Part shown: positions 43,774 to 48,558 of the stretch, piece after piece
Layout of the letters: every line of letters starts with the position of its first letter
Position numbering within the stretch: the first letter of the stretch is position 1
Source: Magallana gigas
Lineage: Eukaryota
Direction: 5' to 3'
Length of the DNA stretch: 64,000 nt
Assembly: GCF_963853765.1 (NCBI RefSeq)
Contig: NC_088858.1
Coordinates: 3,100,001 to 3,164,000 of the forward strand
Notes under the pieces: generated by a model
What the model saw: the letters and a program-made list of their open reading frames with translations, nothing else
Told to the model about the DNA's origin: nothing
The model's database searches: none
Translations under genes and position numbers: made by a program

Positions 43774-44327
43774 TGAAAGCTTTTATTCAAGTCTAATGTT
43801 TTTCTTCTTTTATAAAATTAATGAATTACTGGTCAAAGTATTTATTTGATTGGTGATTTATATTACATGCCTTTTATATTTCTTTGGTGCAAGAAAAAAA
43901 AATGAACAGCTTTAACATTTTAAGATCTTTTTAATATGAATATTTTCTAATTATTCAATGATTGGCAATGACATACCTTGATATAAATCAATCAAAACAT
44001 CAAATCAACAACCTGTTTGTGTTTATTACATTCCGTTTCTCTTCAGTACCATACATAAATGCATATGTAGCCGGCAGTCTTAAATATCCCTCTCATTACA
44101 AAATCTCAAACTTTTTATATGTTAAATATTTATACAAAGAGTTGTCATTAACCATGATACATGGAAGCCAAGGGCATACAATAGGGTTAGAAGCAAAGCT
44201 GGAATGAAAACATTAAAGCAGCTACAATAAGTCAAGAGTGTGTTCTAGGAACATCCACCAGTACTATACAACACTGAGAGCTGACAATCGTCACTAGAGA
44301 CACACTGTGTTACAGTTTAGGTGATGG

Positions 44328-47300
44328 TCAGTCTTGGCAGGCAGACATGGCCATGTTCTTCTCATCCACCAACTCCTTCATTGTGATGTCCATCTTTTCT
44401 CGTGAGAAGTCGTCGATGGGCAAGTCCTTGATGATCTCATAGGTGTGGTCGGGCTTGGTGCGGACCGGGAAGCTGTAAACCAGACCCTCCTCGATGCCGT
44501 ACGATCCGTCAGACGGAACCGCCATAGACACCATGCTACCCTGGAACAAAAACAATCTTTTACTTCAATGCAATGATAAGAAAAGACCATAGAAAGAAAT
44601 GCTAATGTGAATACAAAATTCATGTATATAAAGAATAAACATCTACAGAAATGCATATTTTCACAAACTAAATTGCTTTTAGGTTCTCATAAAAGTACAT
44701 CATTCATTTGTTTTTAATATTATTTTAATATATTTCATTTATTTCTATATATTTTGTAACATGAGAGGTTTACTTTCCTCCTTTCACCTGATTCTGTTTT
44801 AATATAATTACACATTCAGATTAATGAAATTGGTGAGATCCCTTCACAAAATTGTGATAGAAATCAGAATAGGGCATAATTTTTTTAATGACACCAAGAA
44901 AAGTTCAGCAAGTTGGTCCATAGTAAGTGTATGTGAGACTAGCTTTGGTGTTCTAACTGTATATATCAGAGCCTTAGCTGTGGTTTTCTGACTTATTGTG
45001 TATATCAGAGCCTTACCTCTGGGACGCCGAACCACCAGTCATGTACGTGGTCCACAATGGCTTTGGCGGCTGACATGGCACTGGAAAGCTTGCGGGCCTT
45101 GATCACGGCCGCCCCTCGCTGCTGAACGGTCTACAAGAACACGCCTCCTCATTAGCATACATTTGCCATCTTATATATAAATCATCAAGATGTTTATTTT
45201 TGTTGAATAATGTTTGATAGTGTAGTCAAGGAAAAAAAATATCATAAAGGGAAGCCAGCAATACCTTAACAAAGTCATTCTTGACCCAGTTGTCATCCTT
45301 GATGGCCTCCCGGGCCTTGACTTCCTTTCCTCCGACATTAACGACGGCGTAGGTCAGATCTGGATACTGTGTAGAGGAATGGTTTCCCCAAATCACACAA
45401 TTTTTTACCGCACTGTTTGGAACTCCCAACCGAGCAGCTACCTACAAAGAAATTGATTAAAGATATTAAGACTTTCGATTTATTTTACCTTTGAAGGTTT
45501 ATTAGATATTTCATTTTTACTGAGAAAATTGATACAAGTTAAAGTCTAATACCTATGGAAGCTTTGAGATCATTCATAAATAATCTTACTTGTATTATAT
45601 ATATATATGCAAGTATGTTTAGAAGATTACAAATCAGAAAGGACTTATTCATTTCTTATTTTATTTTTCCTATACAAATTGTTATCTTCATTCCTCTTTC
45701 ATTTTTTTCTGTCTTAAGATACTTAACCTTCCTTAGAATATCTACCCATAGTTTTCTTCATGTTCACCCACACATCATTGAATATTTCTTCCCTTTGCAA
45801 AATTTGAACAAAATTTGTTTACTAGTAACCTATGTGGCTATTTCCTCTTGATTGAAAATTGATTACTAACATCTGGGGTTTACCTGTGAGGCTGTGACCT
45901 ACCTGGTATAATTTGATATGTTTTCCACTGACCTTTTTTTAAAAGTGGTTTACCTACTGGTAGTAAATTTGAAGTGGTTTACCTACGACCTAATTTGATG
46001 TGCTTTACCTGTGACCTATATTCAATCAATGTCATACAAAGTTTACCTGTGACCTAGGTTTTGGACTTACCTGAGCCTGTGCTCTGTTTTGGTCCAGCCT
46101 GGTGAGCGCAGTGAAGTTCTGGGGAGGAATGGAGGGAGCGTATTTTTTACAGATGTAGGCGTTGGTGTTTGCTGGGTTACCTACCACCACCACCTGGGAA
46201 TGGCACAATATAATTAAGTTATGACACAACAAGGTGAACACGGTTATCATTAAATTCTTCTCAATGGGATTATCCCATGAATATGATCAAAGACAATTTT
46301 TGATAATCATTATATTTTTTCAAATGGTGCTATTCAACGTTATGCATTATGACTTATCATTGAAAAGAGGCCATGTCTGTGACAATGTTCCGCTCCAATT
46401 GAGTAGCCTACCTTGATTGTCTTCTTGGCCACTTTATCAATGGCCTGGCCCTGAGATTTGAAAATCTTGACATTGGCAGCCAGAAGATCCTTTCTCTCCA
46501 TCCCCTCGCGACGGGGCATGGCCCCCACCAACATGGCGACATCTACATCCTTGAAGGCTTCCATCTCATCACAGGATGGAATCACCTCTAGATAAACAGG
46601 AAAGCCACGTTAATCAACAACTCTTACTCATCAGTCGTGACCAACTTCTATTATCTTAATTCATATTCCGAATTATATATACTTTAATATATATGTGTTA
46701 CAGAGTAGTATTGACCACTGCAAACTCAAGTACATACTGGTTTTTAAAATTACAATATTGACAAACTCCAAATTGCAATTGATTTTATTGATTGGTTCAA
46801 TCATCAAATTAAAACCTAACACTGTATGTTGAATTGTGGTTTTTTCACCATTCCCTGGATTCCCACTCTCCATCACACATTTAATTCATTAAATTATCTG
46901 AATGACCTATTTGTGTGACAATACGACCATTTTAGTTACCATGGTACATCTACTTACGTTGTAGGAGGGGCAGAGAGCAGTCTGTCAGCTCCATGACAAC
47001 ACCATTCAGAACCTCCATCATGGGGGCAATGTCCAGCAGAACCAGAATGATTGGCTGAAAAAGTTAGGGGAGAAGAAACTATGTAATCATGTTATCATTA
47101 GAATAAAACTGTTTCAGATCACCATTTGAATTCACCACTAAAGACAATTCCTACCTGATCTTTGCCAAACACATCTCCCCTGGCTACGGAGTATAGGAGT
47201 GAGTAGGCAATCTGGCCAGCAGCTCCTGTTACAAGCACTTTCAGTGGTTCACCCTGCAGCGAGTCAAAGAATTCAGGTCAAAGCCAGCAACAGATCAATC

Positions 47301-48451
47301 AATAACAAGGACTATAAACACTCATCTTGAAATAAATCAAACCGTGCAAATATCTGATCTGATACATAAATCAATCATATCATTAAGAGGCTTTCCTGCA
47401 AAAGGGAAAATGTTCATTGTTGGAGCTGATCTATGGTCAGTCTCTCTGACTGTGGACATTAAAGGGATATAAATTTTAAGAAAGTGAACGTTGTCAACTG
47501 GTTACAGCCAAGTTAAGAAGTAAGTTGCAGCCATGAATTCAATGGCCTCTATAGAACGGTTTTTGAGGTCACAGGTGACACTAAAGATTATTTTACTTTC
47601 ATGTTAAATACTGAAATCTGATTTGTTTAGACGCAGTTTATAATTCGTTCTGTTACCCTCAGCATTAGCAACACACTTGGCAACTGGTAACACAACAAAT
47701 TGTTACATGTGCATAAATAATATGCGTACAGTTAGAATTCATGTAATTCCTAACAGAAGTCAGTTTAGGTTTTTTTTTAAACTGAGACTTTCAGTACCCT
47801 TCGCATCAGTTGACAATGGTTTTCTTGGGGGTGTCAAATTCAATTGTTACCGTCCTAAGCATATTATAATGTTGCTAGGTCTTGCATAGCGTATTGATGA
47901 GAAGCATGCCAGTATTATAAGCTTTATCTCAGTTAAATCGGAAGAAATGACCCGTTGATAGTTTTATTGGGAAAACAGTCACTGAACTCCTGGAACTTAG
48001 TTTGAATATTTCATTCTTGAAGTATCTTAATGCACAAACTACATTTTCCATCACTGATATAAACATTAATTAAATTATTTATTCTACATTGAAACAATAC
48101 ATTCAATAACATTTCTTGGTGATCTATATCAATGAAGTATGTTAATTATTTAAAAATAATAAAATAAAAACATCAATGTATCCTGCTATATCAGTAATAA
48201 ATAACGTGAACGGCATTTAAAGGTAAACCGATATTTAATAATCGTAATGGTCTTGATAGCTTAATTAAACCATTCCGCCTAATGACACACCTAAGGTCGA
48301 GCAACACGCAGTAACAAAATGACTGCTTGTTTCCTTCATTAGTCTAAAATGACAACTGATTTAGCATTGACAACCTTTTATATTGAAACTAACTTACAAC
48401 AAAACAAACTCAAAACCAACAAATGCACAGAGAAGTGAGAACATTTACCAT
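44328..48451 (-). CDS. MDH1: Cytosolic malate dehydrogenase, 333 aa
   Basis: Exons 48451-48449 (ATG only), 47253-47155, 47054-46958, 46587-46412, 46193-46071, 45441-45265, 45130-45017, 44540-44328 (1002 nt). Peptides: [73 protein letters not shown]. Confidence 0.97.
45878..46070 (-). repeat. Degenerate repeats echoing the MDH1 exon 5 donor
   Basis: Several TTTACCTGTGAC/TTTACCTAC units (CAGGTAAA-like on the minus strand) follow the real donor at 46070. Confidence 0.6.
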
Positions 48452-48558
48452 TTTTGTTTGTTTGCCGGTGTATTCAGATTTCCGTAGTCCACGAAGAGGA
48501 TGAAAGTTCAAGGTCGGTGTGTAGTTTAGAAACTGGTATGGTGACAGATTATTTTTCC

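Follow-up and report, generated by a model that had tools for sequence, protein, structure and literature searches.

A short in-frame extension with a PTS1-like end behind the MDH1 stop codon of oysters and other molluscs, a probable mollusc form of MDH1x

We analyzed a stretch of 64,000 nucleotides from the oyster Magallana gigas (RefSeq assembly GCF_963853765.1, contig NC_088858.1, positions 3,100,001 to 3,164,000 of the forward strand; hereafter, the window), which encodes an MDH1 orthologue on its minus strand. Comparison of the DNA behind its stop codon with that of other lineages makes it likely that this gene carries the mollusc form of the dual-targeting device MDH1x, in which a minor share of a cytosolic enzyme would be extended through its stop codon and sent to peroxisomes. 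The device was described in vertebrates, where readthrough of MDH1 at UGA CUA G exposes a peroxisomal targeting signal of type 1 (PTS1; PMC5133446, PMC4207609). For human MDH1x, readthrough is about 4%, either Trp or Arg is inserted at the UGA, import depends on the PTS1, and readthrough depends on the stop context alone (PMC5133446).

The host gene is an expressed gene for cytosolic malate dehydrogenase, with 333 codons in eight coding exons. Motif scans and stop-to-stop translations placed MDH-like exons at 47.3 kb to 44.3 kb, and stranded poly(A) RNA reads and RNA contigs supplied six exact splice joints (CT..AC on the plus strand, corresponding to GT..AG). The exon 1 junction comes from the loose end of an RNA contig at 47254, which maps uniquely to 48450-48479. 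All seven introns of the spliced model are GT-AG. Exons 2 to 8 were defined by the RNA joints and translation:

48449..48451, minus strand: start ATG, the final triplet of an exon 1 that is otherwise 5'UTR; a GT donor comes next
47253-47155, minus strand: coding exon 2
47054-46958, minus strand: coding exon 3
46587-46412, minus strand: coding exon 4
46193-46071, minus strand: coding exon 5
45441-45265, minus strand: coding exon 6
45130-45017, minus strand: coding exon 7
44540-44331, minus strand: coding exon 8 (last)

The spliced product is complete, with 333 residues and the C-terminus ...NMAMSACQD. The last exon has pig and human cytoplasmic MDH as its best PDB matches and is 95% identical to a Saccostrea cucullata protein named "malate dehydrogenase, cytoplasmic-like," an identity that points to an oyster of the family Ostreidae as the source of the window. 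Relatives bear that same name in Saccostrea and Ostrea and contain the Pfam domains Ldh_1_N and Ldh_1_C. The length of the product, the PDB matches, and the domains and names of the relatives together identify the gene as an orthologue of the cytosolic NAD-malate dehydrogenase. Its mRNA runs continuously from the last coding exon across the stop codon and the extension and ends near 44040-44089, and the RNA reads and contigs contain no extra joint leading out of the last exon.

On the minus strand, the end of the gene reads ...GCC TGC CAA GAC TGA CCA TCA CCT AAA CTG TAA. The initial annotation had called a UGA-C stop followed by PSPKL and a UAA, and both the sequence and the coordinates are exactly as it described:

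44328..44330, minus strand: first stop UGA, annotated and proposed to be leaky; TGA in 13 of 14 lineages
44327, minus strand: +4 base C, in the context UGA CCA U; C in 12 of 14 lineages
44313..44327, minus strand: extension CCA TCA CCT AAA CTG, encoding PSPKL; five codons in ten lineages
44321-44313, minus strand: PTS1-like tripeptide PKL
44310..44312, minus strand: second in-frame stop UAA, which puts K-L at the extreme C-terminus; its position is kept and its codon varies
44040..44309, minus strand: rest of the 3'UTR to the poly(A) region; RNA depth ends at about 44040-44089, and an RNA contig ends at 44089

PKL directly precedes the TAA and thus occupies the position of a PTS1, although the tripeptide itself is non-canonical. 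The UGA and the +4 C of the high-readthrough motif are present, but positions +5 to +7 are C-A-U in the oyster and U-A-G in the full motif. As for polymorphism, two raw RNA runs hold five SNPs in the last coding exon, three in the stretch of 3'UTR from the extension to the contig end at 44089, and zero in the 21-nucleotide stop-extension-stop block, counts that are too few to be informative.

We compared the DNA after the MDH1 stop codon of the window with that of 13 other lineages, among them Ostrea edulis and additional oysters, bivalves of other groups, the abalone Haliotis rubra, and what is probably host DNA of the clam Acesta and the worm Osedax. The Acesta gill and Osedax bone metagenomes were identified from sample and contig-set accessions (SAMN14086996, Ga0072491). 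The first stop, the extension, and the second stop, abridged where marked by dots, are as follows:

Window: TGA CCA TCA CCT AAA CTG TAA, PSPKL
L001-3 (last exon 97% identical): TGA CCA TCA CCC AAA CTC TAA, PSPKL
L004-7 (last exon 91% identical): TGA CCC TCC CCC AAA CTC TAA, PSPKL
L008-10 (last exon 100% identical to Ostrea edulis): TGA CCT TCA CCC AAA CTC TAA, PSPKL
L011-12: TGA CCA GCT TCT AAA CTT TAA, PASKL
L024 (metatranscriptome): TGA CCA GCT TCT AAA TTA TAG, PASKL
L013 (vent metagenome): TGA CCG CGT TCC AAA CTC TAG, PRSKL
L014-16 and L025: TGA CTT AAT CAC AAA CTT TAG, LNHKL
L017-18: TGA CTC ACT AAC AAA CTT TGA, LTNKL
L019: TGA CTT TAT AAC AAA CTG TAG, LYNKL
L104 (genome of the gastropod Haliotis rubra): TGA CTG TTA GGA CCC AAA CTT TAA, LLGPKL
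L022 (metagenome from gills of the clam Acesta excavata, PMC8755941): TGA AAG ..., KCTAKL
L020-21 (bone metagenome of Osedax mucofloris, PMC8645421): TAG GAT ..., DDVVVAILHSKL, ending HSKL
L023: TGA CTA GGC ..., LGKPAQGDGGRDSPSRL, ending PSRL

All 14 lineages with verified DNA, the window included, possess an in-frame extension whose last residues, with the next stop right behind them, are x-[K/R]-L. It is 5 to 17 residues long, with exactly five codons in ten lineages (PSPKL, PASKL, PRSKL, LNHKL, LTNKL, or LYNKL). At +5, oysters and the mussel-like lineages have C and the others have U, and +6 varies freely. The context is UGA CU in L014, L017, L019, and Haliotis and UGA CUA G in L023. The residue at -3 of the tail drifts among S, P, H, N, and A. 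The initial annotation had suggested aligning MDH1 3' ends across molluscs in search of UGA-C plus an in-frame [SACP][KR]L stop; that search came out positive, and in Haliotis rubra, in oysters including Ostrea edulis, and in other bivalves alike, TGA-C is retained together with a brief in-frame extension that closes with x-K-L. Separate from these 14, further lineages are known from gene calls that read TGA as Trp. Six lineages inferred from such calls have tails ending in NKL, SKL, SKL, ANL, SRL, and ANL, and one tail among the calls ends in KYL, which is not PTS1-like.

Gene calls of this kind raised a reading that we rejected, namely, that relatives have TGG in place of the stop, so that the tail would be constitutive and the species of the window would have undergone a recent nonsense mutation. 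It came from protein fragments retrieved with a 70-residue query from the last exon, which read ...QD-W-PSPKL, ...EN-W-PSPKL, ...DS-W-PASKL, and ...ES-W-PRSKL. The contig DNA has TGA every time. The W is an artefact of calling TGA as Trp; TGA also underlies the W's inside intron-derived parts of these open reading frames, and the gene calls of the relatives fail to translate to the query under the standard code. The artefact proved useful in that it displays the predicted readthrough peptide of several species.

The substitutions within the extension follow its reading frame. Among the ten lineages with five codons, K and L are invariant and the two residues before stop vary more. Synonymous changes are frequent, with all four CCN codons used for Pro (CCA, CCC, CCT, and CCG) and CTG, CTC, CTT, and TTA used for Leu. 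The first stop is always TGA in these ten, and the second is TAA, TAG, or TGA; each of the triplets 3' of the second stop varies at all three positions. Between the window and L011, the 21-nucleotide block is 81% identical, in contrast to a flanking 3'UTR that cannot be aligned (13% identity) and to saturation at the exon's third codon positions (25% identity). Because the whole 3'UTR is fairly conserved among oysters (64 to 98% identity along its whole length), conservation between oysters is weak evidence by itself, and the case therefore rests on the distant taxa; outside the extension, the 3'UTR cannot be aligned with that of more distant bivalves.

Dinucleotide shuffles give the rate at which such endings arise by chance. 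For the 3'UTR of the window, 0.9% of the shuffles had an in-frame [KR]L end and 1.0% ended in a broadly PTS1-like way; for the UTRs of all lineages, each shuffled in turn, about 1.0% ended in [KR]L and 0.27% in the classical [SAC][KRH][LM]. Reading the UTRs off-frame never gave a PTS1-like end, and as a negative control, 0 of about 10 bacterial MDH loci from the same metagenome scan had such an ending. The pattern in the window could be a chance occurrence if taken singly, but its recurrence in 13 of 13 other lineages rules chance out. Stop context and hidden signal are thus conserved in all 14 lineages with a protein-coding pattern of substitution, which indicates that purifying selection acts on the protein encoded by the stop-extension-stop arrangement in bivalves and at least one gastropod.

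Together, the conserved TGA-C, the extension, the terminal x-K-L, and the coding-type substitutions support the proposal of the initial annotation that the oyster enzyme may be dually targeted as is vertebrate MDH1. By analogy with the vertebrate system, ribosomes would mostly terminate at the UGA and yield cytosolic MDH1, and a small fraction would decode it with a near-cognate tRNA (for Trp or Arg, as in human MDH1x), adding X-PSPKL. The new C-terminal PKL would then act as a weak PTS1 bound by PEX5, and a minor pool of MDH1 would be imported into peroxisomes, possibly along with unextended subunits of the dimer. There, it could run a malate/oxaloacetate shuttle that re-oxidizes the NADH generated by beta-oxidation.

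Both elements of the putative oyster device look weak. Readthrough may be small because the context is UGA CCA U rather than UGA CUA G. Work in fungi and human cells found an influence of the second base behind the stop and points to U at +5 (PMC4207609); even the context UGA CUU G supports readthrough of just 0.27% (PMC4359377). The 110 nucleotides after the stop fold worse than their shuffles (z = +1.5), giving no sign of a stimulatory RNA structure in that segment. PKL is a weak, non-canonical PTS1. That it belongs among the non-canonical variants had been assumed from the outset, as had vertebrate MDH1 readthrough, and the literature bears out both assumptions: PKL of zebrafish Idh1 is called a PTS1 and HKL of G6pd a weak one (PMC8919083), and PKL of chicken IDH receives a predictor score of +1.3 in Fig. 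S3 of PMC4207609. With an extension of such brevity, the signal draws its positions -4 to -12 from the acidic MDH1 C-terminus (...SACQD), which is devoid of the basic residues that usually help a PTS1.

The alternative that fares best is that readthrough does yield the extension and selection keeps it, for some purpose other than peroxisomal import; the tail might, for instance, be a degron, a motif for interaction, or a tag for stability. We regard this as unlikely. The comparative data show selection on the peptide, whatever its function, and three of the residues found at -3 (P, H, and N) do not belong to the classical [SAC] set. The invariant part, however, is what defines a PTS1, a basic residue and then Leu at the extreme C-terminus as set by the second stop, and this K/R-L end is kept in extensions of 5 to 17 residues that are otherwise unrelated in sequence. 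Moreover, the same enzyme uses the device for peroxisomal import in vertebrates (PMC5133446, PMC4207609).

It is very improbable that a conserved but non-coding element of the 3'UTR, for example, a microRNA or protein-binding site, follows the stop and merely resembles codons. Such an element would fit the oyster 3'UTRs, which are conserved far past the extension, as well as the AAA codon, which is identical in 10 of the 10 five-codon lineages. It would not account for the variation at synonymous positions, which includes a switch from CTN to TTA for Leu, or for the retention of the frame and of the position of the second stop while the identity of that stop changes. Nor does it explain why distant lineages with unrelated nucleotide sequences still end in [KR]-L-stop.

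Slightly less credible still is that the extended protein arises through A-to-I editing of the stop codon (UGA to UGG, Trp) instead of readthrough. Editing would explain why UGA is conserved, as the sole stop that one A-to-I edit turns to Trp, and it would explain the conserved in-frame tail equally well. However, two raw poly(A) RNA runs with depths of about 44 and about 13 contain no T>C change (plus strand) at 44328, and at a reporting limit of 5% and 3 reads, neither run has a base variant at 5% or more anywhere within 44310-44330. There is also no stable double-stranded structure around the stop, and one lineage has TAG, which a single edit does not convert to a sense codon. A chance open frame in the 3'UTR or a UGA that encodes selenocysteine deserves next to no credence: an ending with a likelihood of about 1% per single sequence is to be expected somewhere among the thousands of stops in a genome but is found here in every verified lineage, an Rfam scan of 43800-44600 (E up to 10) returned neither a SECIS element in the 3'UTR nor any other match, the TAG of one lineage also speaks against selenocysteine, and MDH1 is not known to be a selenoprotein.

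The proposed mollusc form of MDH1x can be compared with three sets of known systems. Vertebrate MDH1x (Hofhuis et al. 2016, PMC5133446; Stiebler et al. 2014, PMC4207609) is the closest, and it shares with the oyster the enzyme, a UGA followed by C, an in-frame extension, a basic residue and Leu directly before the second stop, and phylogenetic conservation of context and signal. It differs in adding 19 residues after UGA CUA G and ending in CRL (mammals) or SRL, whereas the oyster would add 5 after UGA CCA U and end in PKL. Context and signal thus look weaker in the oyster.

Mammalian LDHBx (Schueren et al. 2014, PMC4359377) resembles the oyster case in being a redox-shuttle dehydrogenase with a short extension (18 nucleotides, 6 residues). 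It has a UGA CUA G context, an SRL end, readthrough of a low percentage, and piggyback import of unextended subunits. Unlike the oyster device, it concerns a different enzyme, is restricted to mammals, combines the canonical CUA G with SRL, and has been verified experimentally.

The third set comprises Ustilago Tpi1, Rpe1, and Art1 along with the IDH of Drosophila and of Aplysia (Stiebler et al. 2014 and its Fig. S3), in which UGA C(U) plus a cryptic PTS1 gives dual localization, as is proposed for the oyster enzyme. These are different genes, and all have CU after the UGA, in place of the CC seen in the oyster and mussel-like group. Aplysia IDH (TGA CTA, N16-SKL) indicates that the device had already been noted in a mollusc, in another dehydrogenase. 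Deep conservation is likewise not a new idea, since Stiebler et al. state that the cryptic PTS1 of MDH1 is conserved in animals down to Hydra (PMC4207609). The literature that we searched contained no paper devoted to mollusc MDH1 readthrough.

The oyster case is a further instance of a known mechanism and introduces no new principle. Its distinctive features are the minimal extension of five residues, the CC rather than CU context of the oyster and mussel-like group, and the drift at -3. A more speculative reading, which we put forward with considerable doubt, is that pteriomorph bivalves (oysters and the mussel-like lineages) possess a distinct minimal device of five residues behind UGA CCN, with Pro replacing the CUA codon. 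In oysters, a change from SKL to PKL would have made the tripeptide weaker by design, and readthrough and signal strength would be co-tuned so that peroxisomes receive just a trace of this very abundant enzyme. Should UGA CCN prove to be efficient in molluscs, a new context would be added to the UGA CUA G rule, and the oyster extension would rank among the shortest functional readthrough extensions known.

More broadly, the comparison would extend MDH1x, a textbook example of functional stop-codon readthrough, to molluscs. The hidden signal has been maintained across bivalves, a gastropod, and probably annelids despite turnover in the length and sequence of the extension. The lineages offer a natural series of contexts (UGA followed by CCN, CUN, CUA G, or AAG, and UAG followed by G) and another of signal strengths (SKL, SRL, AKL, PKL, HKL, and NKL), which could be used to study the co-evolution of readthrough rate and PTS1 strength. 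For oyster biology, a peroxisomal malate/oxaloacetate NADH shuttle is predicted, and for annotation, the putative extended MDH1 isoform is one that current gene models miss.

The peptides that reading through the stop codon of MDH1 would append in relatives are displayed in database proteins through gene calling in which TGA is read as tryptophan. This code was used for many ORFs predicted on animal-DNA contigs from Logan and ENA. It follows that a "W" in such proteins can stand for a stop codon, and these calls could mislead other analyses. The affected proteins, and those in which no readthrough is needed, are as follows.

Database proteins matching MDH1, by how the PTS1-like C-terminus would be reached
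Proteins and loci with TGA=Trp calling: P0001, P0152-P0155, P0011, P0028, P0037, P0099, P0180, P0192; loci L001-L013
Relatives with a PTS1-like tripeptide (type-1 peroxisomal targeting signal) in the ORF: P0003, P0015, P0022, P0074, P0170, P0351, P0370
Tripeptides in the latter, as listed: SHL, SHL, SRL, CKL, ANL, GKL, ANL

Some MDH1 relatives have a PTS1-like tripeptide in their normal ORF and make readthrough unnecessary, among them a relative from the hemichordate Glandiceps talaboti (ANL). Lineages appear to alternate between constitutive and readthrough-dependent signals, like the Drosophila case (SNL), for which Stiebler et al. (2014, PMC4207609) remarked on such switching.

Three proteins (P0004, P0159, and P0161) give 66-residue matches with 77% identity to the last MDH1 exon (window 44331-44540), differing from the oyster exon almost exclusively by P>S/F/L, T>I, A>V, and H>Y. 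This is the pattern of C-to-T conversion, and the three look like assemblies of bisulfite-treated reads from the same MDH1 gene rather than paralogues. The 79-residue ORF P0026 (region of window 44436-44534) matches residues 1-37 of the exon identically, to ...HTYEI, past which it departs into unrelated sequence. It could represent a contig of chimeric origin or an allele with an insertion, or else stem from a rare alternative junction. The RNA reads show no joint of that kind.

Within window 44081-44461, RNA depth drops ~2.4-fold immediately past the MDH1 stop codon, from 103 to 44 in poly(A) run X22 and from 35 to 14 in run X21. The drop is probably the ordinary loss of coverage close to a short 3' end, and a proximal poly(A) site may instead be its cause. 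A block farther into the 3'UTR stands out between oysters.

Conserved feature of the MDH1 3'UTR
Window about 44100-44165, minus strand: block around ...CATGGTTAATGACAACTCTTTGTATAAATATTTAACATATAAAAAGTTTGA

This block is near-invariant in four oyster lineages, including Ostrea edulis, while the flanking UTR diverges, and it is probably the polyadenylation region or a regulatory site.
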